Positions 3,154 to 63,600 are shown, numbered from the stretch's first letter. The stretch: DNA of 64,000 bases from Lepidodermella squamata (GCA_047495785.1 JBLDXI010000043.1:558001-622000); one strand, 5' to 3'. Translations and numbers: made by a program. Notes: a model not told the origin generated them from the letters alone.

Positions 3154-3226
3154 ATGACGTGATCCCTCCAAAATGTCTGACGAATAATGAAACTAGCTAA
3201 CTAACATAACACTAGCTTTTTCCGAC

Positions 3227-4163: not shown

Positions 4164-4291
4164 TTTCCGACTATTATGACTAACAATTGCACAAATGGAG
4201 ATAAGCAAAATGATAAGACAACATTTTCTCCATAAGCTATCAGTATCGAAATTTGCGTAAATTTGCGTATTTCCGTGTTGGCTGAAGTGCA

Positions 4292-27900: not shown

Positions 27901-30568
27901 TTTCTTTTTGTACCAAATTTTTATACGAAAGTATATTTTTCGATATTTTTCGAATAGCTTTTTTCGTTTTAAAAGCAACTTGCCTTTTTTCGCGAATTAA
28001 ATCGCGTGCTACCACACTCTATTCATCTACACTAATAATCTCTCAATGGAACAAGTCAATGAGGAGGCTCAAATCGCCCAGCTAAGGGCAGAAGTCGACG
28101 AACTGAAGGCAGAGGTCAAGGAGCTTAAATTGGCTGCCAGCGATCTGGCAAGAAGAACCAGTCGTATAGAAGGTCATGTGTGGCGAGCTTCGCTGCTCGT
28201 TGGAGGCATTCCCGAAACCGCCCGCGAATCCGAGGAACTTCTAATCGACAAGGTATACGAGGCGGTACCGATGCTTTGCAACGTACCGATGACTTGCCAG
28301 CGATTCGGACCCCCTCGCAGAAACGCGGAAGGTACCTTGATTAACCGTCAAATACATGTGACTCTTACGCCGGAGGCGGTTTCCTGTGTCTACTCCTGTG
28401 TCAACGGGGTTTATATCCCTCCCTAGCAGTTCTATATACTAAGATCCTTGGAACGGGCGAATACCCAGAATGCTGGCGTAAAGCATTGCTGATCCCTATT
28501 TATAAGAAAAACAGCCGATTAGATCCTAAAAATTATAGACCTATCTCACTTCTGTCAGTATTTTCCAAAATATTTTCAAGTATCCTAGAGAAACGCTTGC
28601 GAGAATGGTGCACGGCTAAAAAAATATTACGCCCCGAACAGTTCGGATTCACGCCAAAAATAGGCACAGTAGATGCGTGTACTCTATTCTACGCCATCGT
28701 GGCTTATTACCTTACTAGGAAAAAGAAAATATACACAGCCTTCGTAGATTTTTCAAATGCGTTCGACAAAATTAGCCGTGCTCTCTTAATGAAGAAGCTT
28801 AGAAAAATAGGACTGCCTTTGTCCTTTATTGAGGTCATTAGGAACATGTATGCCGACAATACATTGCTGCTTAGAATGAAATCGACTATTCTATTCGATA
28901 AGCCAATAAAGTCAAACGTGGGAGTCCGACAGGGTGACCCATTATCACCACTTTTGTTTTCAATTTTTATAAACGATCTCATTCCTTTCCTAATGAAAGT
29001 TTTCCCTGGCTTGACCTTCGGTGAATATGTAGTCTTGGCAATCCTATACGCCGATGACTTGGTCCTACTGGCAGAAAGCGCTGAGCAGCTGCAGAGCCTC
29101 CTGGATGAGCTAGTAGCTTATGCTGAAGAAAATTCATTAATAATTAACGTCGATAAAACAAAAATCTTGATTTTTGAAAAGAACTTTGTTGAGAATAATC
29201 AACTAAAATTTTATCTAAACGGCGAACAACTCGAAAGAGTTAAAGAATTTAAATACCTAGGAGTTTATTTTACTAATAATTTGAATTTTGATAAAATGGT
29301 GGAGGTTGTCAATGCGAATGCGAAACGAATTGCCGCTTTTATACCCAACATGATCGATCGGTTCACCACATATCTACCACCCAAAACGTTTCACCTTCTC
29401 TATAATTCCTATCTGGTTAGCAACTATTCCTATGCTGGAGGATTTTGGGGTCAATCAAAAAAGGCCAAAATTTTTCCTTTCAATACTCATTTCGTAAAAC
29501 AGCTCTGCCGAATTCCCGCCGCGGCGAGAGACGAGCTCGTGAAACGTGAATTCTACCTAGACCCTCCAAGCCTAATCCTCACTAAAGCAGCTATACGTCA
29601 CTTTCTTAAACTCAAATTCGAGGACAACCATATACTGCTGAAGACAGCTTTCGAAATAATTGACTCAAACAAAAATATATATAAACATATCTTCAAAAAT
29701 TTACCAGAAGATGTTGAAAAATTGGGCGGATAAGAAATTTTCAATGCTACATCTAAATTTGAGGGCCTAGCCCTGCTTGAGAGATGGTATGAGAAATGGG
29801 TCGAAAATGACAAATGGTCGACGACCTCTTCTCTAAAATCGCTCTATCAAAATCCTGTTTACTCTGAAGAAAAATTTGACAAACTACTAATGTACTCGAG
29901 TACGCGGCAAGCTTTCTGGTCACTTAAAAATATCCAAACGCTAGCTATGATTAGAACTAATTCCATTCATAAACCGTTTTGCTTTATAAATAACTTCGGC
30001 CTTAGATGTATTTTCTGCTATAAAAATAGTAACAATCCCGTCCTATCTCTAAATAGCTTCGCTGACTCAGTAGAACTTTTAACTCACCTATACCTAGAAT
30101 GCAACTACTTGCCGTATCTACATAATATAAATAACGCTGAAATGAAACCTGATAAAACTGACATAATTAATTCTATAATTTGCTGTGAATCTAGCGGCTC
30201 TGCACATTTATCGAAATTACTATCCCTCGCCTACAATTACCGGATGACTCTAAAATTGCATACATATCCGCCTATTCCATCTACCTAATCTTGACCAACT
30301 ATATCGGCAATATTAATAAAAAATGTGAATAAATATTACTCTGAGCATCACTCTGGAAAAAATTACCTCTGCCTATGATATTTTTGTGTGTGTGGTACCA
30401 TACTGTGCTATATTACATTTATTATATATTATACGATATTATTATAACGATATTTCTGATGCGCCCGAAGCCCAATCGTGGCCGGTGCTTTTATTTTCGT
30501 TTTGAAACAATAAAACCAACAGCTATTTATTTTTCGAAATAAACATAATAATAATAATAATAATAATA
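27900..30568 (+). mobile_element. Second non-LTR retrotransposon (RTE-X/L1-like RT), internally deleted, with a (TAA)n tail
   Basis: ORF1-like 28046 to about 28400 (coiled coil plus LLVGGIPE) abuts the RT at about 28410; NYRPISLLS, QFGF, DFSNAFD, GVRQGDPLSPLLF, YADD; in-frame TAA at 29731; C-terminal CxxC...H...C; (TAA)n at 30546-30568. Confidence 0.88.
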
Positions 30569-35633: not shown

Positions 35634-38600
35634 ATGCCTGGCGGTCACTTTGACCCGGCCGATGCCGAGTACGAGTACCTGGTCGTCGACAAGAAGAAGT
35701 TCCAAGCGTTGTTCACGCGCGAGTTCGACATGAAGAAGAACTGCTGGATCCCGGACGAGAAGGAGGGCTACCTGCAGGCGACAATTGAATCGTCGAAAGG
35801 CGACGAGGTGACGGTGGCGACGAACCGCGGCGAGACGCGCACCGTCAAAAAGGACGACGTGCAGCAGTTGAACCCGCCCAAGTTCGAAATGGCGCCGGAC
35901 ATGGCTGATTTGACGATTCTCAACGAGGCGTCCATCCTGCACAACCTGAAAACGCGATACGCCAACAACCTCATCTACGTAAGTCACACTGTAAAATATG
36001 ATCAAGTGTCTTATAAACACAGTAGTAATCCAATTTAAGCCGAGAAAAATTTAATGAAAATTTAAAACAATAAATGATAAAGGACAATTTTTTAAATTGA
36101 AATTTTTCCATATTTCAATGAAAAATGAAAATTTGCAGGAATTATCGCAGGTCAGGACACTTCGCGCTAAACAGCGTTTCTTTCTTATTCTAATTGCTGT
36201 AAAATTAATTTTGAATGATTAATTGCGTCAATATTTAGTTCAGGGATTTTTGTACGGGCAACTTTCTATTATGCAACCAAGCCTGCACCATTTTTTCAGT
36301 ATTAAATGCGTCATTTCAGGAAATTCCAGTTTTTGTCCCTGAATTTGTTTTTAAATTACCAGATTAATTTTTTTCATAAATTTCAAATTTTTTAATTTTA
36401 ATTGAAAAACTGCGTCTATTGTTTGAAAAAATTCGTAGACTTATTCTGGGCTGTTTTGCGTCACCGTGAACCCGTACCGCTGGCTGCCGATCTACACGGA
36501 CACGGTGATCAACAAATTCCGAGGCAAACGGCGCCAGGAAATGCCACCGCACCTGTTCGCGGTCGCCGATAACGCCTACCAGTACATGCTGCAGGACCGC
36601 GAAAATCAATCAGTCCTCATTACGTAAAAACAATAATCAAAAACCTTTAAATCAGAAATTTCAAATTTCGATTTCCAGGGGTGAATCCGGCGCGGGTAAA
36701 ACTGAGAATACGAAAAAGGTCATCCAGTTCTTCGCCCGAGTTGCCCAGAGCCAGGACCCAGCCGCTCCGGGTCAGATCGGCCTCGAGGACCAGATCGTGC
36801 AGTGCAACCCGGTGCTGGAAGCGTTCGGTAACGCAAAAACTGTCCGCAACAACAACTCGTCACGCTTCGTTGGTTTTTTTTAACAACTATTGATTTTCAA
36901 GGATTTAATGAGTAATTGTTTCGCAATGCAGGGTAAATTCATCCGAATTCACTTTGGCCCACAAGGCAAGATTTCAGGCGCTGACATCGAGACTTGTAAG
37001 TCATTTCGAATTTTTTCGCAATTTTTCAATTGAATAATTTCGCTATTTTTAAAGACCTTCTCGAAAAGTCTCGAGTTACGTCGCAGCAGAAGGCCGAGCG
37101 TGGCTTCCACATCTTCTACCAACTGACTTCGAATGCCATCCCTGGCCTATGTGGTAAGCTTTGAGACCTGAAACAAATTATGCCTAAATTTCGCCAACAC
37201 TTTTGAAAATTGAAACGTTTTCTTGCGATTCCCGTGCTTGATGGATGTTGAATTTTTGAAAGCAACACTAGAAACGTTCTGTTTATCTGATTTTTTTCAA
37301 AGTATTTGGGATTTTATTTGAATTCGAAATCAAAATCAAATCTCGCTCTCTCTAAAATTATTTCCCCATCCAAAAATCATATCTCAAAAAACTGAAATCG
37401 CTGATATCTTAAATGTTTCAAAATTTCGGGAATCATGTTTGCTAGATTCAACCACAAAATTTCCGAGAAATTTACTACTCGAAATCTAGACTGGGAATTT
37501 TCTGCTTTTCATTATCCTTAAATTTAGTCCTTGAACCTCAAGTTTTGTCATGCGAATATCTTTCACCAGCTGTTGCTCAGTTATTATTTATTATTTTTAT
37601 TCAGACAAACTGCTGTTGAACCCGGACCCGTCGCAGTACACCGTTTGCAGCCACGGCGTGCTCACAGTCGAAGGCATCAACGACAAGGAAGAAATGATGG
37701 CGACGGACAAAGCCGCCGAGATTCTCGGCTTCTCCGACGAAGAACGAGCGAGCATGTACAAGAGCGCGGCCGCCATCATGTGGATGGGCGAGATGAAGTT
37801 CAAGCAACGGCCCAAGGACGAACAGGCCGAGGCAGACGGTACGGCCGAGGCCGAAAAGGTCGCCTACCTTCTCGGCATCAACGCCGCAGACCTGCTGAAA
37901 GCCCTCCTCCGACCCAAGGTCAAGGTCGGCAATGAAATGGTGGAGAAGGGCCAGAACTTGGAACAGGTCCTTTACGCGGTTAACGCCCTGGCTAAATCGC
38001 TGTACTGCCGGTTCTTCGACTGGCTGGTCCGGCGTTGCAACCAAACCTTAGACACAAATGCGAGACGGCAGTACTTCATCGGCGTCCTCGATATCGCCGG
38101 GTTCGAAATTTTCGAATTCAACTCGTTCGAACAACTTTGCATCAACTATACGAACGAACGCCTGCAGCAGTTCTTCAACCACCACATGTTCGTCCTGGAA
38201 CAGGAAGAGTACAAACGCGAGGAGATCGAATGGACCTTCATCGACTTCGGCCTCGACCTGCAAATGTGCATCGACCTCATCGAGAAACCGATGGGCATTC
38301 TGTCGATCCTCGAGGAGGAATGCATGTTCCCGAAAGCGACGGACAAAACCTTCCTCGAGAAGGTTTTCCACGGCCACATGGGCAAGTCGCCGAACTTAGC
38401 CAAGCCGAAGATGGGCGGCACGCAGCAGGCTCATTTCGAGATCATCCACTACGCCGGCACGGTTGGCTACAACACAAACGGCTGGCTCGAACGTAACAAG
38501 GACCCTTTGAACGAAACTGTTGTAGCCCTGATGGCCTCGGCTAAGGATAAAGTGTTGTCCTCACTTTTCGAGGCTCCGAAAGAGGAAGCTGGTAAGAAGA

Positions 38601-41600
38601 AGAAAGGTTCGTCCTACGCCACTGTCTCGGCGACCCATCGCGAGTCGCTGAATAAACTCATGAAGAACCTGTACTCGACGCATCCTCATTTCGTGCGTTG
38701 CATCATCCCGAACGAGCGGAAACAGCCCGGGGCAGTTGATGCGCATCTAGTCTTACATCAACTTCGCTGTAATGGTGTGTTGGAGGGCATTCGCATTTGC
38801 AGAAAAGGATTCCCGAACCGAATGATCTACCCGGACTTCAAACAACGCTACACCATCCTAGCCCCTAACGCCATACCACAAACTGGGTTCGTCGACGCGA
38901 AAGTTGTGGCGGAGAAGGTTCTCAAGGCGTTGAATCTCGATTTGAACGAGTACAGACTGGGCAAGACGAAGGTCTTCTTCCGAGCTGGGGTTCTGGCGCG
39001 TTTGGAAGATTTGCGTGACACGCGCCTGTCTGCTTCGATTTCGTACTTCCAAGCTTGGGTCCGAGGCTACATGATGCGAAAGTCCTACAAGAAACTGGAC
39101 GACCAACGAGTTGCCTTGGCTATGATTCAACGAAATATTCGAAAGTACCTAAGCGTCCGTGATTGGAAGTGGTGGAAATTGTACACTTTGATCAAGCCCC
39201 TTCTCAGCCAAGTACGTGCCGAGGATGAAATGCGCAAAAAGGAGGAAGAACTCGAGAAAACCAAAGCAGAACTCGAAAGAGTCGAGAAACTCGCGAAGGA
39301 GCTTGAGGAACAAAATGTTCGAATCACCCAACAGAAGAACGATTTGTTCATCCAGTTGCAGACCGAACAAGATTCAATGGCCGAGGCTGACGAGAAAATC
39401 GCTGGTTTAGTGACGAAAAAGGCTGAGATGGAGCAGCAGATTCGAGATGTCGAGGCGAAACTTCAGGAGGAGGAACAACGGGCTGAAACCCTGGAGAACG
39501 ATAAGACAAAACTTACTGAAACTATCGAATCTCTTCACAACAACATCTCGGACCTTGAGCATAACTTGGCGAAGGTCGAGCAGGATAAACTAGGCCGGGA
39601 ACAGCAGATTCGGAAGATGCAGGAGGAAATGAATCAGCAAGACCAATCTCTGGCTAAACTTGCCAAGGAGAAGAAAAACACTGAGGAACAGCTCCGTCAA
39701 ACCGCCGAAGCTCTTCAGGCCGAGGAAGATAAGGCGAATGGCCTGATGCGGCTGAAGCAGAAGCTCGAGCAGAACATCGACGAGTTAGAGCAAGCCTTGG
39801 ATAAGGAGAAGAAGACGCGCATCGATATCGAGAAGGCTAAACGTCGCATCGAGGCCGATATGAAGCAGACTCAAGCGGCTGTCGAGGAGTTGGAAAGGAT
39901 TCAGAAGGAGCTGGATGAAGCTTGTAAGAAAAAGGACCGTGAGCTTCAAGATTCGGCTCGGAAGTTCGACGATCAGGCTAGCGTGATTTCCCAGCTTCAG
40001 AAGAAGATCAAGGAACTCACGCAACGAATCGCCGAACTTGAGGACGAGCTCGAGCGAGAACGCCAGGGTCGTATCAAAGCTGAAAAAGCTCGGCAGGAGC
40101 TTCAGAAAGAAATGGACGATCTCGGCCAGCGATTGGACGAGGCAGGTGGGGCTTGCCAGGCCCAGGTCGAAATGAACCGCAAACGCGAGCAAGATCTTGC
40201 GAAGGCTAAGCAGGAAATCGAAACTCAGCGCGTGAACTTCGACGAGCAACTTGCTTCGGCTCGAAAGCGAGCCCAAGACCAGCTTGCAGAACTCTCCGAA
40301 CAGCTTGAACAGGTTCAACGGGCTAAATCGAAGGCGGAGAAGGAACGGAACCAAATCAAGCAGGAAGCTGACGAGCTTCATACCCAACTCGAAACTCTGG
40401 TGAAGACTAAGCCTGGTGTTGAAAAAGCTGTTAAGCAGCTCGAAGCTCAACTTGCCGAGGTGACTGCTCGCTTCGAGGAATCTCAGCGAGCTGCCCAAGA
40501 CGCGATTAGTTCAAGGTCGAAGCTAGCCCAGGAGAATGTCGAGCTAATCGAGCAGTTGGACGAAGCTCAACGTCAAGTTACAGCTTTGTCGAAGCTCAAG
40601 AACCAGATCGCTGCCCAGTTGGAAGATTCGAAGAAAGCAGTTGATGAAGAGGGTCGAGCTAAAACTCGTCTGCTAGCCGAACTCCGAGCTGCTCAGGGTG
40701 AGTTGGAGCGCCTCCGTGAACAAATGGAGGAAGACGAGGAATTGAAGAACCAACTCCAGAGACAACTCAATAAATCTACCCAAGAACTCTCCGACCTGAA
40801 AGCAAAGATCGCTAGTGGCCAAATCGGCGGGAATCAAGAGCAGGTCGAAGAGGTTCGCCGCAAGCTGAACGCTCGCCTCCTGGAGCTCGAGCAGCAGTTG
40901 GAAACGGTCACTTCGAAGGTCGTAACCCTGGAGAAACAAAAGGCGAAATTGGTCGCTGAATTAGATGATGCTAACATCTCTGCGGAAAGAGCCAATCTAG
41001 CTGCGCTTCAAGCCGAGAAGAAACAGCGCATTATCGACAAGTTGATCGAAGATTACCAGGGTAAAGTCAAAGCTGCGAACGCTGAGGCCGATGAGGCGAA
41101 ACGTGAATTGCGATCCCGATCGGCTGACGTCTTCCAACTGAAAAGTATGCTGGAGGAAGCTCGGGATGTTTCTGAAGCTCTTCGAAAAGAGAACAAGAAT
41201 CTTACTGAGGAAATCAAAGATTTGACTGATCAGTTAAACGAAGGTGGCCGATCTGTTGGCGAGGTCGAGAAACTACGTCGCCGGCTTGAAAACGAGAAGC
41301 AAGAACTTCAAGCCGCTCTGTCTCAGACTGAAAACGCCCTGCGGAATGAGGAATTGAAACTTCAACGAACCCTAGTCGACATCGCTCAATTGAAGCAAGA
41401 CCTCGAGAAGCGGCTTCAGGAGAAGGACGAGGAGCTAGAGGTTGCTCGGAAGTCACATCAACGAGCCTTGGAATCTGTCCAGGCTAGTTTCGAAGCTGAA
41501 ATCAAAGCTAAGAACGAAGCTTTGAAGGCTAGGAAGAAACTTGAGGAAGACGTGGCTGAACTCGAAGTTCAGGTCGATCAGGCTAATAAGACTAAGGCGG

Positions 41601-42713
41601 ACCAAGAGAAGTCACTCCGTCGTCTTCAACAGCAGGTCCAGGAGAACCAGCGAGTATTGGACGAAGTTACAGCTGAGCGGGATGATCTTCGAGAGCAGTT
41701 GTACTCACTAGACCGGCGTCAGATGGCGACTCATGGCGAACTTGCTGAGTTGCAATCTGCCCTGGAGCAATCTGAGAAGGCTCGTAAAACTGCCGAGACT
41801 GATCTGAGAGAGGCTGTTGATCGGCTGTACGAGTTCCAACAACAGGCTGGGTCGTTGACTGCTGCTAAGCGTAAACTTGAGGCTGATGTTCAGGCCATGA
41901 ACGTAAGGCATCAACTCATCAGCAATTTTCTTTCAAATTAGTATTATTTTTCTTAGACTGATCTCGATGATGCTATGCAACAGGCGAAAGATGCGGAGGA
42001 GCAAAGCAAAAAGTACCAGAGCGAGGTGAATCGACTTGTCGATAGTTTGAAGGCTGCTCAAGAGGCGGCTTCGCAATCGGAGCGTTTGCGAAAGCAGGCC
42101 GAACAGCAGCTGCGTGAGATGCAGTCGCGAATTGACGAGGCGGAACAGTTGACGTCACATACGAACAAGCGGCATCTGACGCGGATGGAGCAGTCGGTTC
42201 GCGAACTCGAGGCTGAGCTGGATGCGGAACGGCGGGCTCATGCTGAGACGCAGAAAATCGCCCGGAAGGCTGAACAACGAGCTAAAGATTTCCAGGCAAG
42301 TTTAGATTAATGCTATGATTGCGACGATGTTTTTCTCGAAATTTTAGGTTGAGGCCGAGGAAGAGAGACGGGGCCAAGCGAAGATGAAGGAGAGCATTGA
42401 TCTGTTCACGCAGAAGCTCAAATTCTACAAGCGTCAAATCGATGAAGCTGAAGAACTGGCAGCCGTTAACTTGGCGAAATTTCGCAAATCCCAGGCCGCT
42501 CTCGAGGAGGCCGAACAGCGCATCGAAGAGGTCGAGATTCAGATGGGCAAGCTGAAGTCTCAGTCACGCTCGACAGCCTCTCTGGCTGGAGGCCAGGGCG
42601 GCCAGTCAGGACCTAGTCGGGCAACGAGCACTATCGGCATCACCTCGTCCTCGGTGTCAAACCTGGCGACCTTCCCGGAAATGGTCATGAGCCCTCGCAA
42701 TAATCGAAAATAA
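35634..42713 (+). CDS. Mhc: Muscle-type myosin II heavy chain, 8 coding exons (35634-35978, 36439-36623, 36679-36868, 36932-36995, 37055-37153, 37605-41902, 41957-42295, 42348-42713), 1961 aa
   Basis: [15 protein letters not shown]-loop, [46 protein letters not shown] motifs, long heptad rod; exon lengths sum to 5886 nt in frame. Confidence 0.97.
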
Positions 42714-49102: not shown

Positions 49103-50349
49103 TAGCGACAACGCCAACCATCAACAGCCAACTTCAGATTAAATCAGATGATATGATGTTCTGTTCCATTTAACGTTTACTTTCAACCACCAAATCCATT
49201 CATGACCGCTATAGGTAAAACAAAACTATTTATTGTAGAGGATATTTTTTATGTTACCTCTTTGTGCTGAATAGCAATCGCGTATGCTCCATTCTGTTAA
49301 AATAAAATACGGAATCTCGTGGTTGATGCATGAAATATGAAGTCCCGACCGGTAGACATTTACTAAAGGCTTCGGCACGCAGCCCTGTGACCTCAGATGA
49401 AAATCTGTCCAGTTTGTAGCATCACCTTGGATCCGGCTCTTGTTCGGTACATGTTGGGGTCTAAGTCTGCCGGTTGCCGGTTGGGTCAGGTCGTCGGTTG
49501 GGTTTGGGTCGCTTAAATTCCAGCCGATTGACCGGTAAATTGAAATTTTCAGCATGAAAGCACCAAATTTAAATAATTGTACGCGGTAGATAGTGAAAAT
49601 CACGCGAACAATTCTTCGTGGCAGGCTTAGAAAGGAAGCTTTTATCAACAAACTGTGGCCTGCGCCAATTGGTTTGTAGAATTTTGGTGATTCATAGTGG
49701 TTGAAAGACATTTTGAACTATAAAGGGGGCCATTGCATGTTTCACGCTTTTTTTTTGGTAAACAAAAAAGCCGGTTGGGTCGCCGGTCGGGTTAGGGCGC
49801 GAGTTTTCCTGACCTGTTTCCACCTCTACAGCTTCTCTCTTTTCCCATTTTTTACCTCATTTGATCATCAATTATGATTAACTGTCTTGTTTTTGATCTT
49901 CAAACCGTTGAAATAGATTGTCCCCAACTCGCCGCCAGCGGAAGCCTATGTTGGGGAAGCCAGTTTCATGGCAGACGACCTTTATTCAGGATTTGAATAA
50001 AAACAAGTAGCCGTTTCTACGTTCCTGTTTATACATGCCAACCATAATTACATGTGCCAACCCTTTTACCATAAGTGGACAAAATAAGTCACATAGACTT
50101 AGCCCTATAATTCAATATCAACCTTTCACTTTGCTTTGACATTTTTCTTTTCCACTCAACATGTGGTTGCAAAAAGACTGAACTATTGCCGGGCACGACG
50201 ATCGGATTTTATTAGCAATCATATCAACTTCATCACTTGCGTGTTCACTTTTCACATTCAACTCGATGATTCCTAGCTGAGACATTGTAAAAATAACCTA
50301 AGATAGCATGCGCTTTTTACAACACGGCAAGCGACACAAAAATAAAGAT

Positions 50350-50371
50350 AGAGAGAGAGAGAGAGAGAGAG
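50350..50371. repeat. (AG)11 microsatellite in a 3' UTR
   Basis: Perfect dinucleotide run. Confidence 0.95.
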
Positions 50372-50409
50372 TGCAAAGATTCAGCTTAAGCTACGACAGC
50401 CTCCTCGAT

Positions 50410-51246
50410 TTACTTGCCGTTGTTGCCGTTCCAGCTGACAGCCATGTTGTTGGTGTTCCAGTTGGCCCAGTTCGAGGCATCGTTGAACGTCGGGACACCG
50501 ACAACGACAGGCTGAGCGACCCAGGTCGTCTGTGCGACCCATGTCGTCTGGGCGACCCAGTTCGTCTGGACAACAGGCTGGGCGACCCACGCCGGCTGAG
50601 CGACCCACGCTGGCTGAGCGACCCAGTTGCTGTTGTCAGTCCAGGTTGGGGTGACCCAGTTGGTCCATGTCTGGGTGCGGCGCTCCTCAGCCCAGCGGGG
50701 GAACGACAGGACGGGGCAGGTCGACCATGCGCCACCGCGGACCGAACGCCACGTCTGGCCACCGATGATCCACTGGCCCTTGTCAGCCGGAGCTGTCAAC
50801 ATGTTGTTGCTGTTGTCGTAGTAGCCAGAGTTGTCGTTGTTGTTGGTGTTCCAGTTGACGTTCGCGTTGGCGTTGCTGCCATCCCAGTTGGCGTTGGCAT
50901 TGACGTTAACGTTGCCGTTGTTGCCGTTGTTGTTCCAGTTCGACCACGTGTTGGTGTTGAGACGGTCGCCGGTCCAGGTGGGCCAGTAGCCGTAGACGGC
51001 GCGCGAGCTGCGGCCGTCGCTGTTCCACTTGGGCTGTTTGCACGACAGAATGGGCCCGACGAATCGGTCCTGCCAGTTGTAGATGATACCGCTGTACGCG
51101 ATGATCAGACAGATGTTGATGAGGGTGAAGGCGAGCGAGACGATCAACAGCGTCATGTGGCTGATTCCGACGTCGACTATAATCAAAATTGATTTCAAAT
51201 TTCAATCGATCAATCAGCCATAATCATCGATAGATGACTTACCCAT
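50410..51246 (-). CDS. Trp/Asn-rich signal-anchored repeat protein A, 256 aa (exons 51243-51246 and 50410-51176)
   Basis: ATGG|GTAAGT micro-exon; N-terminal hydrophobic helix; NWN repeats; six WVAQ repeats; strong C/G third-position bias; paralogous to B, C and D. Confidence 0.85.
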
Positions 51247-53214
51247 TTTTGCAGATGGATGGGGCTCTGTTTTTTCTCGGTGTTTGTAAGTGAGTGTGTC
51301 TACTTACACGAAAATGTAGCTGGAATGAGGCGGCGAGGCGAGCCGCGAGCCGCCATATGAGGCGACACGGCGCTGTGTTGTGGATACTTTTCAGCACCGC
51401 TGTCATGGCTCGCCTCCATGGCGCATTCAGCCGCGCCATCGCCTAGGAGCGATTGAGCCGAAAAAACGCGTCGTTAAAAACACCCCGCGCCCAGTCAGGT
51501 GGCCTCGTCGTCTCTTCGCTTCACGCTGCCTTCGTCAATGAAACGGGGTCGTCGCTGTTTTAGACCACCACGCCAGGTGTTGACTGGCGATGGGCGATGA
51601 TGGCAAGGTGGTACACTATCATTATTAAAAACTTGCCAAGTACACTCGTTTTAGACGCAGGCAATTAAGACACTTCAAGCCCGAGTAGTAACACTTTTCG
51701 AATACAAAAAGCATCAGCATAGCAGAGGGGGAAAGCAATGTTTTGAAATTATCGTCAATAACCGCTGAGTGTCTGTCGAGCTTGACTGACTCAGAGCTTC
51801 GAGCATCGCGTCTTGTAAAAAAAGCACCACTCCTTATTTCCGATAGTGTAAGAATCGAGAAAATTCAGTGTCCACGTTGCATTAAATGCATTAGTTTCCA
51901 GCGCACAAGCTCGGTTACAATAGAAATGAGGATCGAGATATCAGCAGCAGAGTTACATGGTATGTAATAGGTTCATTCTACATCCCGCGAAAAGGAATGA
52001 CTTTTATTTTTCGCATTCATGACAAGACCTTCAACGCGTTCGAAGGAAAGGACGATTTCGGAATTTCGACTTTGAAAATGCGCAGAAAATTGAATTTGAT
52101 GAATTCTTGATCGCCCTGAGGAATATTTTGAGGAATAATGCTTTTAAATGTTGGCTACAAGGTTTTAAAGCCAGGACACCGTTATCTTGCATGGTCAGGA
52201 CATACTTGCAGTTCGAACGTATTCAACCTGAGATTGAAATTTCGATTTTTTTTTCAACTTGAAATTTCATAGGTTTCTGATCATTGTTTGATCCAACAAA
52301 AAATACCAAAGTGTCTGCCTTAGTCTCATTGACCCCTGTGTAAATTCGAGTTGGAAATAAAAGATGGCGACGCTATTGAACTTCAATCAAACCGGCCGAA
52401 TTCGTCCTATCCGCCAGGACTTATACAGGCGGAGTGCGTGATTTTTGTGCTGCAAAAACTGTCGCGAGAAAAACTAGAAACGCTGAATTCAGATCTAAAT
52501 GCTGAGCCTCCAAAACTTGTTTAAACAAAACTTTTTCGGTGATATAAGTGCGGGAGAAACTTCATAGGAGTAATTTAAAATCGAAAACTCCAAAGCTGAA
52601 GGCGCCCGACACAGAAATTAGGGTGCTCGAAAAATCGACTGAAATCAGCTGGGCGGATAGGACGATTTCGGCGAGTTTTTGTACAGCCTTAACGGTGATA
52701 GATAAAGACAAACGGATTTCAAAATCGTGGCCTTCGAAATCTCCTAGAATTGCCGTCAACATTTTTTTCTACTGCAGATAAATAATTCTGCTATGAAAGG
52801 GTTAGGATGGTCTTTTCAGCCAAATGAACGAACAAGGAATGAGTTAATTGAGGTTGCTTTCCTCGATGTATCTCCGTTAAACATTGTGTGGGCCCTGCTT
52901 ATTAACACATAAAGTCCAACTTCACGCTCAACAACCTGTCTCACCTCATCTCCCCGTTGCCCTTCCTAAAAGCGAAAGTTTGATTAATATTTTTTTAAAC
53001 TAAAAAAGGAATCAGTGCGCTGCAGCATACTACTCGGCTGCTGTAATTGAGAAAGTAGTCCCAACCTTTCCTAGTCTCGCGAGACAGACGCAGACGAAAC
53101 TGCGGTAATAACAGGAGTCGCATTGTTAAAAGCAAACTGTAAGTTTATTTAATTCAAAAGCCCATCAGCACCAGCACCATAGTACTGCTTTCGTTGCATC
53201 ACATCACGTTTCTC

Positions 53215-53720
53215 TCATTGTTCGACTATCCATTTTCGCTTAACTATGCGGGGGAAAGCCAGAACAGGGCACGTCGACCACGCGCCGCCTCGCACCGACC
53301 GAAACTCCTGCCCGCCAATGATCCACTGGCCCGTGTCAGTCGAAGGTGTCATTATCAAAAAGTCATTCCAGCCAATGTTAAATCGGGCGTAATTGGCATT
53401 GTCGCCACTCCACGCCGATGGCGAGTTCGGTTCCATCCGGTCTTCCGCCCACGTGGGCCAGTAGCCGTGGGCCACGCGCTGCGTTCGACCCTCGCCGCTC
53501 CACTTGGGCTGTTCGCAGCTGAGGACTGGCCCGACGAATCGGTCATGCCAGTTGTAGATGATACCGCTGTACGCGATGATCAGACAGATGTTGATGAGGG
53601 TGAAGGCGAGCGAGACAATCAACAGCGTCATATTGCTGATTCCGAATTGACCTGATTACATGAACCATTATTTCAATTCATGGCTTTCAATCGATTATCA
53701 CGACGGAATTACTTACCCAT
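53215..53720 (-). CDS. Trp-rich signal-anchored protein B, 146 aa, core only (exons 53717-53720 and 53215-53651)
   Basis: Same micro-exon and conserved core (WHDRFVGPVLSC...QWIIGGQ...SVRGGAWSTCPVL) without the repeats. Confidence 0.82.
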
Positions 53721-54522
53721 TTCGAGGGTAAACTGTTTGCAACTTTATATGTGTATCAATGTGGCCTTGCACCAAAGCCGAGAGCGTATTGATGCCACAC
53801 CGTCGCCTAGGAGCTATTTTGAGAGTCTCGTCAAAAGCAAGAAAAAAGAAAGAGGGTAAAGATGACCGGGAGAGTCTTAAAAAATACATGGCCCTAGTCC
53901 AATGGTCGTTTAGTCGCTTCAGATTTTCCTCGAGATTTCTTGGCAATTGAGCCTTAAACATTAAACAACTGGCGACGAGCCCATGCACGATACATTATTA
54001 CTGTGACTTTCATGATTCAAAACTGCTTCTGACCACAAGCCCTAATTCGGAAAACAAGTTAATAGTCCTAAATTCCAAATAGCATTTAAAGTTCATTCAT
54101 TTTATTATCGGACATTTTATTGTGTTACAGAGTTTCTGCGTCAATAACAGTTTACTTTCGAGTTGCCACTAACGCAACCAAAGTAAATTAATAGCTAGTG
54201 AAACTTCGTGAAATTCTGATTTGATTTCACATCTGATTATAAATTATATACCAATTCAGAAACAAGTCTGCAAGTGGCATGGGCACGGCGATAGTTTTTT
54301 ATTTTTGAAGCATTTTTCACTGTCTGTTTCATGTCATCATCATCAACAAGCGCAGTTAAAATCGTCCACCAGCGTCACAAAAGCCTGTGTTTCCACTCAA
54401 GGTAGGCTCACGAGAACACGAAAGAAGCTACAACACAGAGAGATTCAAGAAAAAATAGAGAAATTTCCTATAAAATGAGATGAGAAGATGCAGGAAGCGA
54501 GCGGTCGAGCGAGCGAGGATCT

Positions 54523-55364
54523 TTACTTGCCGTTGTTGCCGTTCCAGCTGACAGCCATGTTGTTGGTGTTCCAGTTGGCCCAGTTCGAGACATCGTTGAA
54601 CGTCGGGACACCGACAACGACAGGCTGAGCGACCCAGGTCGTCTGCGCGACCCATGTCGTCTGGGCGACCCAGTTCGTCTGGACAACAGGCTGGGCGACC
54701 CACGCCGGCTGAGCGACCCACGCTGGCTGAGCGACCCAGTTGCTGTTGTCGGTGTAAGGAACGGCGCCGCTCCAGCCGGCCCAGTTGTTGTTCGTGTTGA
54801 CCCAATTGGTCGACGGCTGCGTGCGGGTCTCGGCCCAGCGCGGGTACGACAGGACGGGGCAGGTCGACCACGAGCCGCCGCGGACAGACGTGAAGGTCTG
54901 GCCGCCGACGATCCACTGGTAGGCGGCGTTGTAGGTGCGGGCGGTGGCCGCGTCGATGTAGTTGTTGTTATTGTTGTTGTTGGTGTTCCAGTTGACGTTC
55001 GCGTTGGCGTTGTTACCATTCCAGTTGGCGTTGGCATTGACGTTGCCGTTGTTGTTCCAGTTCGACCACGTGTTGGTGTTTCCGTTGTAGTCATCACCGG
55101 TCCAGGTGGGCCAGTAGCCCCAGGCGACGCGCTGTGTGCGGCCGTCGCTGTTCCACTTGGGCTGGTCGCACTTGAGGACGGGTCCGACGAAGCGGTCCTG
55201 CCAGTTGTAGATGATACCGCCAGTCGCGATGATCAAGCAGATGTTGATGAGGAAGAACGCGAGCGCGATAATCAACAGCGTCATGTGGCTGATTCCGACG
55301 TCTAAATCGAAATCGATCGAATAATAATCGAAAAATCACTCAGGCACTCAGTTGACTTACCCAT
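54523..55364 (-). CDS. Trp/Asn-rich signal-anchored repeat protein C, 260 aa (exons 55361-55364 and 54523-55301)
   Basis: Same architecture as A; C-terminal coding region nearly identical to A. Confidence 0.85.
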
Positions 55365-55728
55365 TTTTTCGGTTTCTTAGCTGTTTCTCACAGGAACACA
55401 GGAGTGTAAAAATGTGCGAAATTCGGCTGTATGGCGGCGGCTGCGGCAAAGTACGCGTTTTTGAAGGCGCCCGCGTTGCCTGGCGGCCGCGTGAAAGGTA
55501 TCCGCGGCCTTTCACGCGCGTCCCCTAGTCGACTGGCGTTTGTTTTCGCTACGCTGCATTCAGCGCCCGTGGCAGCGCGCCGCGCGTCGCCTAAACAAGC
55601 CGGCGACTTAAAACGCCGTGTAAGCCCGCCCTGCCGTGCCATATCGCCAAAAACCTTGTATCACACTGGTTTGCATTTTGCATCAGTTATATCATAACAA
55701 GCGGTAAAAAAACCAACACCACTCAGCA
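55365..55728. promoter_or_regulatory. Probable bidirectional promoter between genes C and D
   Basis: 364 bp between divergent ATGs; CpG-rich; carries TCGCCTA-like motifs also seen upstream of A and B. Confidence 0.55.
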
Positions 55729-56132
55729 ATGGGTAAGTAAAATCACTGCAACATGCCTATTTGTTTATTCGATTTCGCTATTCCCTAACAGAGACCACCC
55801 TGATCCAAGCCATCACCGCCATCGCCATCATCCAGTTCGTGTTCGTGCTGTCGACCGGTGTCATCGTGTTCTACTGGCAGGACAAGTTCTGGGGCCCGTA
55901 CCTGCGCTGCGAGTCGATCAAGTACGACTGCTCTGACAACCGCGACACCCGCACCAACACCTGGACCAACTGGAACACCAACACCAACTGGAACACCAAC
56001 GGCAACTGGAACTCGTGGAACAACCAGCCCGTCGCCCAGCCAACCGTCTTCTCGTCGTCGTCTGGCTCCGTGTCGATCACCAACAACGGCGACTCGTGGT
56101 CCAGCTCGTGGAACACCAACCAGGGCAAGTAA
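55729..56132 (+). CDS. Trp/Asn-rich signal-anchored protein D, 114 aa, divergent member (exons 55729-55732 and 55792-56132)
   Basis: ATGG|GTAAGT micro-exon; TM then WQDKFWGPYLRC; NWNTNTNWNTNGNWNSWNN; VAQP; ends SWNTNQGK; AATAAA at about 56350. Confidence 0.82.
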
Positions 56133-57696
56133 ATCGCTGCGCAAGGTTATTTGCCACCTTTTGCCTTCAACCTTCTGAATCTTTCCTTCTGCTTCTTCTT
56201 CTGGACTTCTCTTCGAATCGACTCGGCATGAAACAAATTAGGCGACTTGATCATACCTGATGCGTTCACGTAATCTATTTTTGTGTCTGTCTCATCGATC
56301 TCCTTGTTTATTATCAGTTATTTCAACAAATCATTGTAAATCATTTAAAAATAAAACAACGGGCACGACGGTATTCAACACCAGACTTTTTGTTATATAC
56401 TGCTATTCCGGGTGTTAAAAACTGCATTCATTGAGGGATCATATGGAGAAGCTCCAGCGCGTCCTTGGCAACCGCGCGCACACACACAGAAAAAAAAACA
56501 AACAAGTGGGTTGCCAGTTTTCCAGTTTTCACGTCTGTTATTTTGCTCCAAATCTGTCGTTGCTTAGTTACCATTCATTCCAAAGTAAACAGTACTATCA
56601 ATTAGTCCTATTTCCATAGGCGATCGTCACCTGAGCCCGTGGTTTGATTTCACGCTTCAATGGCCTCAACCACGTGCCCAGGTCATCGTTTAAAGAAAGC
56701 CACCCCTTGCTACCAAGGAGACAAAATTAGGCCGTCAATTCACCTGGTTTATTTGCCGTTCTAGCCGAGATACCGCACTAAACGCTCATATCCATGCTGA
56801 AAAATCCCTAAATGACAAACAACAAATAAAGAAGCGATTTGAATTAAGAAAAGAAGAAAATACGATGTCCTCACTCTGACTCACTAGAGTACGGCGCATC
56901 TTTCCACTCTTCTCGTGAATAGCAGGGAGCATTACAGATTACAGACTTTCCGGACTTTGAACATACCGGATGTGCTAACGAAGCGGAAAATTTACGAGCT
57001 GTGAGCTATTACTATTATTCATCTCATCATCCGTGAAGTCGCCATTTAAGTACTTAATTCAACATATCAAAAAGCCAGCATTTTCTCATTTTTTCAGCAA
57101 TCCTTGCGTATTGTGTATCTAGTGGGCGAATTGCTCACTTGAGTGATCAGTAAAAAAACTGCAGTTAGCAAAATATCAGATTTTTTTGTTCGTCCGTCGA
57201 GATTTCAGCCTGCTCTCAACTGATACTGTGGTGACGGCACGTGTGAAAATCGACATCATATCGTCTTAGAATAGAAAAAACGGCGGTGTCAAGAGCGGTC
57301 ACTCTCGATTTGCTGCAATATTAGGCGTAAAAACAAACGCATTTGTGCTGCTACTGCAACTGAAGAAGCGGCATCAGGCACATCGCACTGGCGCGTCTCG
57401 AGTGCACCGCATCGCATCGCAGATAATAATACAAGGCGTGTTTTTTCTGTCTTAATACTACTACGACTTGTGGCTGGGTTGCTGGCTGGTCGCTGGTCGG
57501 TAAACACACCATCACGGCTGGTTGTTGAAACAGAGGCTAGGCGGGTGGTCAGCTCGAATTTCACTGTTTTTTATTACTACCAATTACAACCTGCCATATC
57601 GCACCGTCCTTTGTTCTAACCGGTCTCTTGTCTCTTTATGCAACATCGCCGTATCTGGGCGTTTCCAAGGCTAGAACGAAACCCGTTGAAAGCGCC

Positions 57697-58740
57697 ATGC
57701 AGTTGATACCAGCATTGCTACTTGTGCTTCTTCTTCCGATCGAAGCGGCAATCGCTGCCACAGCCGAAGCGTGGTTGCTATCCAGTTCAGATTCCGCCCT
57801 AATCAATTTCGGATCCGATCAAGATCAGCGACTCTGTAACGGCGTTTTCGCAATTTCAGCATTTCGCACTAAGGAATTCAGGCCTAACCCTGAGACACAG
57901 CCATGTCACGCTGCATTCGTCAATCCTAACAACCGTCCCGAGTTATCACTCGCTGTTTTAGTCACCCCGCAATCGGAAGAAGAATCAGACGAAGCTTGGC
58001 GGGTTGAAATCGCCGGTGTGCGGGCGTCAAACCCGCAGGCATCACCTGTGCCACTTTTCGACTCGGATGACATTGACGATATCAAATCGTCTCAATTCAT
58101 CTCACTTTTACCTGTTTCTTTAGTCTCACCCGCAACTCTAGCTGTTAAGATCGAACAATCTGAGCGGAAAGGCTTGTCAAATTTCGATTATTCAATCAGT
58201 ATAATCGCCCAAATTGATCAGGACGGAAATTGCCCGCAAGATATGCCAAACGTTTTCGACCACTGCCCCGAGTTAGGTCTATGCCTGCCCGAGGCCTTGC
58301 TCTACGCGGCGATGTGGAACGGCTCGGCATCTCTGGCTGACTTCTGCCGAACTCCGCCGAAAGAACACATCCTAACAGCGATTATACCAATGTCGAACGA
58401 CGCGATTTGCAGTTTGGTCACTCTGATCCTCTACGCTGTAGTTGGATTGCTCACTGTTGCGATTGGGTTGAGAGTGGTCCGTCTTTCGAGATGTGTTTTT
58501 ACGAAAATTATGACGGTGAAATCTCAACCGAACAGCCGGAGGATGTCGCGGCAGAACTCGATACCTCAACAATTGATGGAAGACGTGGCGGCAAAGGTTG
58601 TCAGTCTCAAGAGCGTAGTCGCTACGTTGACGCACCGGAAAGTGGAACCGGAACCTGTCAATGATGCAGAACCTGAAGCCGAATTGCCTAACGATGACGG
58701 TGATGAGGATCACGCAGGAGAGGAAGAGGAAGATGAGTAA
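57697..58740 (+). CDS. Single-pass type I membrane protein with a divergent CUB-like and a degenerate LDLa-like region; acidic tail; intronless
   Basis: Signal peptide MQLIPALLLVLLLPIEAAIA; LCNG...PCHAAF; CPQD...HCPELGLCLPEAL; TM ICSLVTLILYAVVGLLTVAIGL; domain names are inferred. Confidence 0.7.
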   Translation: MQLIPALLLVLLLPIEAAIAATAEAWLLSSSDSALINFGSDQDQRLCNGVFAISAFRTKEFRPNPETQPCHAAFVNPNNRPELSLAVLVTPQSEEESDEAWRVEIAGVRASNPQASPVPLFDSDDIDDIKSSQFISLLPVSLVSPATLAVKIEQSERKGLSNFDYSISIIAQIDQDGNCPQDMPNVFDHCPELGLCLPEALLYAAMWNGSASLADFCRTPPKEHILTAIIPMSNDAICSLVTLILYAVVGLLTVAIGLRVVRLSRCVFTKIMTVKSQPNSRRMSRQNSIPQQLMEDVAAKVVSLKSVVATLTHRKVEPEPVNDAEPEAELPNDDGDEDHAGEEEEDE

Positions 58741-60687: not shown

Positions 60688-63600
60688 ATGGCGGGCACGT
60701 TGCTGGAGAGCTCAGAACACGCCGCTCGCCTGCTCGCCAGCATCCTAGCAGCCGCGAACCGCACTCTCGCCGCGCGTCTCGAGGGCAACTACGGCACCGA
60801 TGACGATGACGACGGCGACCTGTGGAACGGCGACGCGGGCGGGGCGGGGCTCGGGCCGTGGGACCCCAGCCGGGCCATCCGATCAACGCAGCAGCCCGCC
60901 AGCAAAACCACCCGCCAGCACAAAAACCGGCCGATTTTCCCGCTCTCCACCGTCGTGCCGTCGCTATCTCAGGACCAGACCACATCGGATAGCGATAGAT
61001 CGTCGCCGTTTCTCGCCGTCATCACAGCGACAACGTTCGGCAACTCGACAGTGCCGAATAACGGAACTACGTCGACCAACGCGTCTTCACTCATCAATTT
61101 ACTAGTTTCGTCACTAGCAGATAACGCCAACGAGTTTGAAGTCGCGTACGAACCGCCATCTCTCGGGTCGAACGCCACGTTGACGCATATAATTGGGGCG
61201 GAGTTCGACCTGGAACTAGCAGCTCACGTCGGCATGTTGGCTCTGATAATGCTCATCGTCCTAGTCAATGTTTTCGCTGTGGTCACGTTGTCCTACGGCA
61301 TTCGAACTCCAGTTGCGCCTCTCACGATCTGGACCATGTTCTTCCTGCAGCAAAGCGGCGGGCGGGAGGCGAGGCGGCGAAGTTCGCTCGCAGCTGTTCA
61401 GCAACACCAGTCTCAGTTCAAGCGACGGCGTAGCAGTGCTTGGGACGACCCGCCACTGCCTCTACCTCTACCTGTAGTTCAAGAACAAGAGGAATTCGAT
61501 GCTGAAATTGCGCGGTCGACGATGAATGTCGCCCTGAGGGCGTCGAAAGCTGCTCAAAACATTCGAAGTCGTCGGTTAGCCGTCGCCAGTGCTACGAATG
61601 AGGAAATTCCAAAGTGAGTGTTGGATTTTTTCTGCTTTCAGGGTGAAATTTATATTTTTTCACATTAGTATGGACTGCTCGACTTTCCCGTTTCTGCTGA
61701 GCCTGGCGCTGAGCGATCTGTTCATAGGCGTCGTGATAGCCCCGCTGCAGTTCGAAACTTTCCGCCAGAACGGCGTCTGGAAGCTCGGCCCGGTGTGGTG
61801 CGACATGTGGCGGGCGGCGGACATTTTCTTCTGCACCTGCTCCGCCCTGCACACGGCCGTCATAGCTGTCGATCGGTGGTGGGCACTCTCAAAAAGTCAC
61901 TGTAAGTCAAGAATATCCGATTCCCTCTTTTCAAGGTGTTTTAGGCTTTATGTATCGAAGACAAATGGGCTTATTTATAGGAGTGATTCGTAAAACAAGC
62001 CTTTATCCGTTTGGTAGATCTCATCCCACTGCTTAACTTGAGAGCTGTGTACCAGCCATCATTGTTCTTGAGAACTTTACTGCAGAGTTGCTTTAGCCTG
62101 TCACCGACTTATTCAGCACTGGGATAATTTATGCAAAAGCCATTTTAAGCCCCAGATTTTCTTTCTTTAAAGATTCTTTGCGGATTGAAGTATTTTTCTC
62201 AATTTTATCTGCCTCTGATTCTGTCTTGTGAGGAATAGTGTTCCTATATTCCTCACAAGGATTCAGTGGGTTTCATCTTTCATCAAACACCAAATTAACA
62301 AAATCCACAAATACTATATCATAATCAATCAATAACCAGTTCACATACTACCCGCACAGAAAAAACTGGGTGGAAAGACGACATTTTTACATGTCAGAAT
62401 GTTACATGGAAACTCTGTTCATCTGGCTCCAGGGAACAAGCTGTAAATCTATTACATGGAACAATTGCGCGTTTACATGGAACATTACTAATACTGGTTC
62501 CACCCTTATTCCACCCTCATTCCACCCTAGTTACACCTACTACCACGGCCCTTTTCTAGTTTCTGTTTCCACCCGATTTCATGAAAAACGAGAAGTCCGT
62601 TAGAAGTTTTGTTTATTAAGCACATGCCTGATAAACACAAGTCGAAGACAGCTATAATCTGGAAGTCCAGGATAACAATTTAGACTTGAGCGCCAACATA
62701 AGCAACAGTCACACACCAGCACTTTGCAAATGGTCAATTCAAGAGCGCAAAAAGACGTTAAGAATTTTCGAAGAATATCCTGGTAAATGTTTACAAGATA
62801 GACTGACAATACGATAGAGAGAATAAGAAAATCGTAAGAAAACGCCATTTAACAGATTGACGAACAGATTCACAACATCCAGTTATCGTCGGCTTCGTCC
62901 CCTTGTTTTCTGCCTCTCCAGTCGCAATTTACCTCGAAAGCTCGCATCATCAGCTGCCTGCTTCTTGATCTCCCGAATTTCCGTAGTTGATAATTCAGGC
63001 TCGTCTGTTTGCGTAATTTTCGCATAGGTAGCTCTGTCACCTTTCGACACCATATGAAAGATCGGTCGGTCATCTGAAACGAGCCGGAAAGTTTTCTGTA
63101 CAAACATTCTCCGAGAAAAGTCACTTACCTTTGATGCCGTAACACCTTGAAATTTATGACAGATCTTCCCATTAGGAGTTAAACTGCTACCTAGGTCTTG
63201 CACAAATTAAACATGAATTCTAAAAAGAAAATTTATTGAAAATTACAATAGGAGAACACAAAAAATAATCATTTGAGACAAGTTAGATCAGATAGCAAAC
63301 AAGTTGTGAAAAAATCGTAGTGAATTGCGCCACGTGCAACTTATTTTGCCAAGTTCAAATTTTTGAATCTAACGGACCTCGGCGTGGTGTGACTTGCAAA
63401 CGGGCACGTTAATGCTCAGGCTTCAACAGGAGAACGCATGCTAAATTTGGTGGAATGCGAGGATGTAAAGACGACATTGTTCCATATTATTCCAAATTGT
63501 TTCACGTAAGCAAGACTTCGTGTATTCGCATGTAAAAACTGCGTAGTTACATGTAATTTTTTGGGTGTAATCTTTACAAAATTCCAGCTGGTTTTAATTT

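Follow-up and report, generated by a model that had tools for sequence, protein, structure and literature searches.

The window analysed here is a stretch of 64,000 nucleotides (nt) of Lepidodermella squamata DNA (GCA_047495785.1 JBLDXI010000043.1:558001-622000), corresponding to 558-622 kb of contig C43 in a searched genome of 121 Mb and 151 contigs. It contains four paralogous neighbouring genes, A, B and C on the minus strand and D on the plus strand, in which the initial annotation, made from the sequence alone, recognised a new family of membrane-anchored Trp/Asn-rich repeat proteins. Their open reading frames (ORFs) were first listed at 50410-51198 (-) for A, 53215-53631 (-) for B, 54523-55284 (-) for C and 55761-56132 (+) for D.

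Four Trp/Asn-rich genes and their transcripts

The proteins encoded by A-D are 113-260 residues long and share 33-82% identity, and the four ORFs are indeed present at these positions with every motif quoted for them. A hydrophobic segment of about 25 residues (Kyte-Doolittle 19-residue mean 2.4-2.9) precedes a post-helix motif that reads WQDRFVGPILSC in A, WHDRFVGPVLSC in B, WQDRFVGPVLKC in C and WQDKFWGPYLRC in D. GYWPTW and QWI(I/V)GGQxxxSVRGGxWSTCPVL were found in A, B and C as described, and C contains NTNTWSNWNNNGNVNANANW. A and C each carry six WVAQ(PA/PV/TT) hexapeptides, encoded by two short arrays per gene (Table 1), and the C-termini read ...SWNGNNGK in A and C and ...SWNTNQGK in D. 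The extreme Trp density was borne out as well: A and C consist of 9.3-9.4% Trp and 16-18% Asn, D of 8% Trp and 14% Asn, and the repeats are almost free of Lys, Arg and Glu. The annotation had also given A, B and C two Cys each; this holds for the part after the helix, but a third Cys lies inside the helix (NICL).

Comparison of three public sequencing runs over 50300-56250 showed that run X2 is genomic DNA, with a flat depth of about 100-fold, and that X1 and X3 are of cDNA type and confined to the genes. Upstream of each ORF we found ATGG followed by GTAAGT, with a phase-1 AG acceptor 59-66 nt further on, so that each of the four genes has a 4-nt first coding exon, ATGG, and a GT..AG phase-1 intron, predicted in the case of B. 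Splice joints were recovered from cDNA at 51176/51243 for A (X1 and X3), 55301/55361 for C (X1) and 55732/55792 for D (X1 and X3), all of them GT..AG on the strand of the gene. The 5' ends lie at 51331 (A), 55435 (C) and 55638/55643 (D), as shown by loose ends reading GTATCAACGCAGAGTACATGGGG, the SMART template-switch adaptor. Because the adaptor directly abuts genomic sequence, the transcripts of A, C and D carry no spliced leader. A spliced-leader sequence of rotifer type had no match in the genome. Poly(T) loose ends mark the poly(A) site of C, and the D contig in X3 (664 nt) extends beyond 56250. The ORF starts of the initial annotation are thus not the true starts, and translation begins upstream at the mini-exon, giving predicted N-termini of M-V-D-V-G-I-S-H-M (A), M-G-Q-F-G-I-S-N-M (B), M-D-V-G-I-S-H-M (C) and M-E-T-T-L-I-Q (D). 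The predicted spliced start of D is identical to that of an independent homologue, P0004. All database searches described below used exon-2 sequences, exon 1 contributing only Met and one base.

Since splicing, 5' adaptors and the poly(A) tail of C all follow the strand of the genes, the ORFs on the opposite strand, whose expression would have undermined the annotation, are excluded as the expressed ones; they are by-products of GC-rich third positions. Third-position GC content (GC3) is 0.86 in A, 0.88 in C and 0.95 in D, compared with 0.72 in B, 0.61 in a myosin gene and 0.33 in a LINE ORF of the same window. Asn is encoded by AAC rather than AAT at ratios of 40:1, 42:4 and 16:0 in A, C and D (98 vs 5 in total), and such codon usage agrees with heavy expression of these three genes. 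Word depth in X1, which as a contig word depth is not an expression measure and cannot rank genes, reached 13,000-41,000 over A and C, 8,500-10,500 over D and at most 589 over B, with zero in intergenic bins. A, C and D, whose cDNA coverage is very deep, and apparently also the weakly expressed B, are genuine spliced, polyadenylated genes. An (AG)13 microsatellite lies at 50346-50371, within the 3' untranslated region (3'UTR) of A.

Gene B differs from its neighbours. No splice joint was listed for it in the cDNA runs, in which its word depth is weak, and it lacks the 3'-end motif found at A, C and D. B is nevertheless intact and constrained (omega 0.43 vs A). The proposal that it acts as a core-only subunit is made doubtful by the low depth, the relaxed codon bias and the missing 3' motif; B is a weakly expressed copy. 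A role for it is still possible because core-only forms occur elsewhere (P0005).

An orphan family at a single locus

A helix-module profile built on the shared N-terminal region found eight members genome-wide, all of them within one 33-kb locus at 608-641 kb of C43. These are A-D (E 1.7e-34 to 2.8e-22) and four microprotein genes of 48-77 residues (E 1e-27 to 4e-9), which lie 17-19 kb beyond the window. A-D all carry the defining N-x13-W arrangement of the module, that is, Asn or Gln 14 residues before an invariant Trp, followed by Q-D/N-R/K-F/Y-x-G-P-x-L-x-C. Searched against 1.84 billion representative proteins, the profile returned eight credible clusters, none of which is named in any source: three long forms (P0001-3), two D-like forms (P0004 and P0006), one core-only form (P0005), one resembling the microproteins (P0008) and one with a Gln-rich tail (P0012). 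Long Ig-like repeat proteins of bacteria (P0007, P0009-11 and P0013) were rejected as spurious, since each matched only about 20 profile positions, several times over. A Pfam-A scan of A-D gave no family at E<=1, the PDB, searched with profiles A2 and A3, yielded nothing beyond chance matches (E 0.8-2.3), among them a low-complexity Asn run, and a feature search of the ESM Atlas gave no usable match. Literature searches on Trp-rich or Asn-rich repeat membrane proteins returned nothing relevant. The family was therefore rightly called unrecognised, and it is established as an orphan, clade-restricted family at a single locus. The idea that N-W-N tracts are widespread in the genome was rejected; they are essentially confined to the A-D locus.

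Several of the cluster contigs are about 0.9-1.2 kb long and look like transcripts, because they end in AATAAA and one of them, L007, also has a poly(A) run. One of the eight clusters lies on a syntenic 4.7-kb metagenome contig, L021, which has a long gene ending in ...ATGK on one strand (-) and three D-like genes on the other (+), an arrangement that mirrors the divergent C/D pair. A scan for metagenome loci found nothing beyond the JGI contig already known. P0012 is encoded on a 5.7-kb metagenome contig from ENA (L020), flanked by a SOCS-box gene on one side and on the other by a gene of 654 residues that matches no Pfam family, a genomic context different from that of the A-D cluster.

Conservation within the family is concentrated in one part. 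In twelve long or core-only sequences the invariant positions (L9, F15, N19, L22, I24, I30, W33, C44, Q46-P47-K48-W49, G53 and C147-P148) comprise the two Cys and residues of the helix and of its juxtamembrane continuation, and the helix module is the sole part common to all eight paralogues and all outside homologues. The possibility that the invariant helix residues occupy one face was rejected, the conservation being without 100-degree periodicity. Comparison of D with its homologue on L022 gave a dN/dS of 0.17 for the helix module and 0.86 for the tail. The Asn tract of C is polymorphic in length and sequence: at 55041 the X2 DNA run has 15 nt inserted in frame (Asn-Gly-Asn-Gly-Asn), single-nucleotide polymorphisms cluster in it at 55013-55046, and X1 cDNA contains two variants at 54805 and 55015. 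Tract length also varies among P0001, P0014 and P0015, and dS between A and C drops from 0.44 in the middle to 0.096 in the 3' third. These patterns indicate that the tails diverge by repeat slippage and gene conversion and that the helix module is under purifying selection. P0002 and the long gene of L021 have no Asn/Trp tract and keep the core with short Pro/Val(/Trp) repeats (REPVVVR, PQPVWVA), which marks the tracts as an optional insert between the two Cys. The tracts are thus a fast-evolving insert and not the core of the family.

The genes also share short motifs in their flanks (Table 1). The 64-kb window contains TAGGCGAYG only three times, upstream of A, B and C at a distance of 100-160 nt and on the strand of the gene, and the motif is a candidate promoter element shared by these genes. 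The 3'-end motif CGTCGTGCCC recurs outside the window at 937-946 of L005, at the end of a transcript-like contig, and at 682-691, 2243-2252 and 3274-3283 of L021, where the copies follow the long gene and two D-like genes. It is found at or near family poly(A) sites in at least three species and always on the strand of the long genes, and hence antisense after D-like genes. A general 3'-end signal of the genome was considered and rejected, with 40 genomic copies vs 29 for the control; the combination of AATAAA and CGTCGTGCCC is unique to gene A genome-wide. Being conserved at family 3' ends and not enriched across the genome, the motif is a conserved, family-specific 3' element.

Table 1. Coordinates of the genes, repeats and motifs of the A-D cluster, counted from the first nucleotide of the window
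Feature	Position	Strand	Details
Gene A	50191..51331	-	Exon 1 51243-51331 (5'UTR + ATGG, ATG 51244-51246); intron 51177-51242 (66 nt); exon 2 from 51176
Gene A, 3' part	Stop 50410-50412; 3'UTR to ~50191	-	From sequence, ORF
Gene B	53215..53720	-	ATGG 53717-53720; predicted intron 53652-53716 (65 nt, GT..AG); exon 2 coding sequence (CDS) 53215-53651
Gene B, 3' part	AATAAA ~65 nt past stop	-	From sequence
Gene C	54275..55435	-	Exon 1 55361-55435 (ATG 55362-55364); intron 55302-55360 (59 nt); exon 2 from 55301
Gene C, 3' part	Stop 54523-54525; poly(A) site ~54275-54280	-	Poly(T) loose ends at 54275-54280
Gene D	55638..56398	+	Exon 1 55638/55643-55732 (ATG 55729-55731); intron 55733-55791 (59 nt); exon 2 from 55792
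Gene D, 3' part	CDS to 56132; 3'UTR to ~56398	+	From sequence
Gene A WVAQxx arrays	50512..50625	-	18-nt period, 3.2 + 2.8 copies
Gene C WVAQxx arrays	54625..54738	-	18-nt period, 3.2 + 2.8 copies
Gene C Asn/Trp tract	54957..55062	-	33-nt repeat x2.5 + AAC run; length-polymorphic
Gene D (T-N-W-N-T-N) repeat	55965..56012	+	18-nt repeat x2.7
Upstream motif TAGGCGATG	51437..51445	-	~110 nt before 5' end of A
Upstream motif TAGGCGACG	53801..53809	-	Before B
Upstream motif TAGGCGACG	55585..55593	-	In 208-bp C/D divergent promoter region, ~155 nt before 5' end of C
3'-end motif CGTCGTGCCC	50191..50200	-	7 nt past AATAAA of A
3'-end motif CGCCGTGCCC	54281..54290	-	One mismatch vs CGTCGTGCCC; ends at mapped poly(A) site of C
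3'-end motif CGTCGTGCCC	56361..56370	- (opposite to D)	5 nt past AATAAA of D

The window is eukaryotic, and a Pfam scan showed that it also encodes a myosin heavy chain, LINE-type reverse transcriptases, an ankyrin gene and a sodium:solute symporter. The myosin heavy chain, of muscle type, is an uninterrupted ORF of 1463 codons at 37550-41941 (+), about 8 kb upstream of the A-D cluster, and comprises the head from profile position 207, an IQ motif and the tail. Reverse transcriptase ORFs of LINE type lie at 10109-11095, 24899-27766 and 28486-29733, all on the plus strand; one LINE ORF has an apurinic-type endonuclease domain and is seemingly full length (955 codons). Two further plus-strand ORFs, of 370 codons at 57628-58740 and 309 codons at 60688-61617, had no Pfam match, and the former encodes hydrophobic segments and a very acidic C-terminus. 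Between A and B, at 51892-52886, lies a high-copy repeat with an X2 depth of 3,000-9,000, compared with about 100 around it, and with many internal deletion joints in that DNA run; it is probably a transposable element family.

Predicted topology and patterning of the tails

AlphaFold2 predicted a continuous helix at residues 5-37 of C (alignment A3) and 6-39 of B (alignment A4), with pLDDT 70-88. The helix ends in an aromatic Y/F-x-W, carries a polar residue (Asn, Gln or Glu) at constant depth, 14 residues ahead of the Trp, and in every member has small residues directly before the conserved IIY/IIF-x-W (ATG|G, AYS|G, STG|V, AAA|I and SGA|I).

Three features of the region after the helix bear on its location. 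First, exactly two Cys follow the helix in almost all members, whether long or micro; they are separated by about 100 residues in long forms and lie near each other in D-like and micro forms. Second, the tails are depleted of N-x-S/T sequons, with 1 observed vs 12.9 expected when Asn positions are held fixed (C, D and P0001-3; Poisson P=3.5e-5), although these tails nevertheless hold 15-44 Asn and 23-35 Ser+Thr. Third, Gly-Lys ends occur in A, C, D, P0001, P0014, P0015 and the long gene of L021, a Gly-Lys-Lys end in one microprotein and a Gly end in P0002 and another microprotein (the two microproteins being m1 and m3); ends of GK, GKK or G were counted in 8 of about 17 members, across lineages. 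A Gly-Lys end is the classical substrate for carboxypeptidase and peptidylglycine alpha-amidating monooxygenase. Because of the paired Cys, the sequon depletion and the Gly-Lys ends, we consider with fair confidence that the tail lies outside the cytoplasm, in the lumen or at the cell exterior, in line with the surface-facing tail of the initial annotation. A disulfide between the two post-helix Cys would be reasonably likely, and C-terminal amidation stands at about an even chance. The length of the hydrophobic segment, its conserved mid-helix Asn/Gln and its aromatic end modestly favour retention of the helix as an anchor over its cleavage.

The genome encodes a strikingly expanded set of PHM-type copper monooxygenase domains (PF01082), with 39 six-frame matches and a best E of 2e-39. 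About 25 of these 39 matches are clustered on contig C13 (~1.99-2.36 Mb), several of them with stops, the best match being L019. Two DPY19 genes are also present. The tails contain a near-invariant WSTC and recurrent WSxW among their WxxW/WxxC motifs, which correspond to the consensus for C-mannosylation, and this modification at WSxW/WSTC is a possibility.

The tails of A, C, D, P0001 and P0003 contain runs of 10-16 residues in which every second residue is Asn and the others are V, A, T or W, as in NVNVNANANW, NANANVNWNTN and NANWNTNTNVNTNTNW, and Gly/Asp/Asn-rich stretches separate these alternating runs. Both the N-x-N alternation and the longest alternating runs exceeded those of shuffled sequences (p<=0.002). 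Such alternation sets all Asn on one face of a strand and the apolar and aromatic residues on the other, and polar/non-polar alternation is known to favour beta-sheet self-association. The recurrence of the pattern while the sequences differ between species suggests that the alternation itself is selected. The initial annotation went further and proposed cross-beta or beta-solenoid assembly. The particular materials that it listed (cuticle, scales, jaws, adhesive, or a high-refractive-index or ice-binding material) are guesses. The alternation does resemble that of amphipathic beta-strands. AlphaFold2, working from shallow alignments, predicted no solenoid, and the DNA repeats run to only 2.5-3.2 copies. 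The one tail element predicted in both runs (C and B) was a weak hairpin at QWI(I/V)GGQ..SVRGG. Since the alignments are shallow, the missing tail fold is not evidence against beta structure, and an amyloid or beta-solenoid would be compatible with the patterning.

Candidate functions and comparison with known systems

We infer for the A-D products a topology, disulfide, amidation, possible C-mannosylation, self-assembly and structural role that would fit together as follows. The proteins would enter the secretory pathway through the conserved N-terminal hydrophobic helix of about 25 residues, which would rather be kept as a type II signal anchor, with the N-terminus inside and the tail outside, than be cut off as a signal peptide. 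The Cys of the juxtamembrane WQD(R/K)FxGPxLxC would pair with the second invariant Cys (WSTCP) and close a loop, which in some members would hold charge-poor, sequon-free N-x-N tracts of strand length studded with Trp. Past the loop, the short Pro/Val/Trp repeats (WVAQPx) would lead to a Gly-Lys end that could be trimmed and then alpha-amidated. The unglycosylated tails may then associate with one another through Asn ladders and Trp/Val faces, and the product would be an abundant membrane-tethered surface layer or secretory matrix. That the genes encode signal-anchored, unglycosylated, self-associating surface or matrix proteins is our preferred reading, held tentatively at somewhat below an even chance, and a self-associating structural or surface role seems to us equally plausible, short of probable.

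Several points weigh against it. Beyond the helix, AlphaFold2 gave pLDDT<50 from only 11-12 aligned sequences, and the tails may be disordered. The flank charges of the helix are nearly balanced, so the positive-inside rule leaves the orientation unfixed, and insertion with the N-terminus out can also occur when a hydrophobic segment is long and the N-terminus short. The sequon depletion could partly reflect a repeat periodicity that the fixed-Asn shuffle misses, and WxxW is enriched over shuffles only in C (p=0.03) and P0003 (p=0.0002). The contig word depths given above cannot rank expression. Finally, a function common to the family cannot depend on the Asn/Trp tracts, as these are missing in P0002 and the L021 long gene.

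The same N-terminal segment could instead be a cleaved signal peptide. The genes would then form a secreted-peptide superfamily in which WQDRFxGPxLxC is a conserved pro-region and hypervariable, C-terminally amidated, Trp-rich tails are released for defence, toxin-like action or signalling. This would account for the small residues at -3/-1 before IIY/IIF-x-W in every member, for a conserved N-terminus next to a tail with dN/dS 0.86, for a tandem cluster of paralogues of very unequal lengths, and for the G, GK or GKK ends and the very deep cDNA coverage. However, signal-peptide cores are usually much shorter than about 25 residues, and the present segment, with its mid-helix Asn, runs unbroken into the aromatic end as part of a 33-residue AlphaFold helix. 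The tails are almost without positive charge, unlike Trp-rich antimicrobial peptides, and contain no conserved dibasic processing sites. We consider the secreted-peptide explanation unlikely.

That constraint is strongest on the helix module (omega 0.17), which alone is common to all paralogues and homologues, and that its polar Asn/Gln/Glu keeps the same depth, 14 residues ahead of the Trp, would also suit a model in which the module is the functional part and binds a membrane partner such as a pump, channel or transporter in the manner of phospholamban, sarcolipin or FXYD, with the microproteins as the minimal form and the tails secondary. We take the A-D helix to resemble the Asn-containing helices of the SERCA regulins. 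However, no related chain came out of profile searches of the PDB (A2, E<=10), where phospholamban and sarcolipin are deposited, helix conservation lacks one-sided periodicity, 200-residue codon-optimised tails are unexpected for a stoichiometric regulator, and no partner is known, which leaves this model rather unlikely. If the helix module does matter instead of the tails, the family offers a natural tail-length series of 48-260 residues for finding the membrane partner.

A broader version of our preferred reading joins both parts: the eight genes of the locus would build one membrane-rooted material, in which the helix co-assembles long and micro subunits in the membrane and the tails of A, C and D, unglycosylated, amidated and possibly C-mannosylated, interlock through Asn ladders and Trp faces as a cross-beta layer on the cell surface. 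We regard this as improbable; if true, the material would be a functional amyloid, or a surface skeleton, new among animals and made from an orphan family.

The orientation could also be the reverse, with the N-terminus outside and the Asn/Trp tail in the cytosol, where it would form a prion-like condensate attached to the membrane or a skeletal lamina beneath it. Tracts rich in Asn are a typical feature of prion-like domains in the cytosol, and the length of the hydrophobic segment, the short uncharged N-terminus and the Arg/Lys after the helix (WQDRF...K.C.QPKW) would fit such an insertion. The Cys pairs, the depletion of sequons and the amidation-type ends would all be unexpected in a cytosolic tail, making this orientation quite improbable. 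Very improbable is an ice-binding or antifreeze surface protein whose flat Asn/Thr strand faces bind ice: flat repetitive polar faces are a hallmark of beta-type antifreeze proteins, and N-x-N and N-T-N-T alternation would yield a pure Asn face, but no antifreeze or ice-binding Pfam family was matched, the arrays are Asn-based rather than T-x-T or T-x-N, the tracts are irregular, differ among paralogues and are missing in two long homologues, and no regular solenoid is predicted.

The novelty lies in the family itself, and no new principle is shown. No counterpart has been described for proteins that combine 9% Trp and 17% Asn with a near lack of charge and a conserved membrane helix. Were the tails to form a surface or secretory material, as in our preferred reading, they would amount to a new means by which a microscopic invertebrate builds an extracellular layer, and would provide a natural test case for self-assembly by binary-patterned Asn ladders. 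Its small size, clustering and clear definition, together with mapped transcript ends and shared promoter and 3' motifs, make the family directly open to experiment.

The closest known systems include the microprotein genes beyond the window, which lie on the same contig and strand and share the helix with Asn 14 residues before Trp, the WQ(D/N)(R/K)(F/Y)xGPxLxC motif and the second Cys, one of them ending in GKK; at 48-77 residues they have almost no tail, whereas the A-D proteins are 70-210 residues longer. Phospholamban and sarcolipin likewise have a short N-terminus and one helix with a mid-helix Asn and an aromatic lumenal end, and the microproteins are of similar size. However, no sequence relation was detected, and the A-D proteins, with 113-260 residues, are long-tailed compared with regulins of less than about 60. 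The conserved hydrophobic N-terminus, fast-evolving C-terminal parts, tandem paralogues and Gly(-Lys) ends recall conotoxin and amphibian skin peptide families, from which A-D differ in the anchor length and polar residue of the segment and in products that are large, uncharged and built of repeats instead of short and cationic or Cys-knotted. WSNW, WPTW, WTNW, WANW and WSTC in the family, together with WSSWS in P0004 and three WSxW in P0003, are reminiscent of the WxxW/WSxWS motifs of C-mannosylated thrombospondin repeats and cytokine receptors, but Pfam found neither a thrombospondin repeat nor a fibronectin-III domain in A-D. With binary-patterned beta-sheet and amyloid formers and Asn-ladder steric zippers, the tails share Asn alternating with V/A/T/W over 10-16 residues, Gly/Asp-rich turns and few charges; in A-D, however, where they are known from sequence alone, such tracts are optional and lie inside the Cys-closed loop of what would be a membrane-anchored protein.

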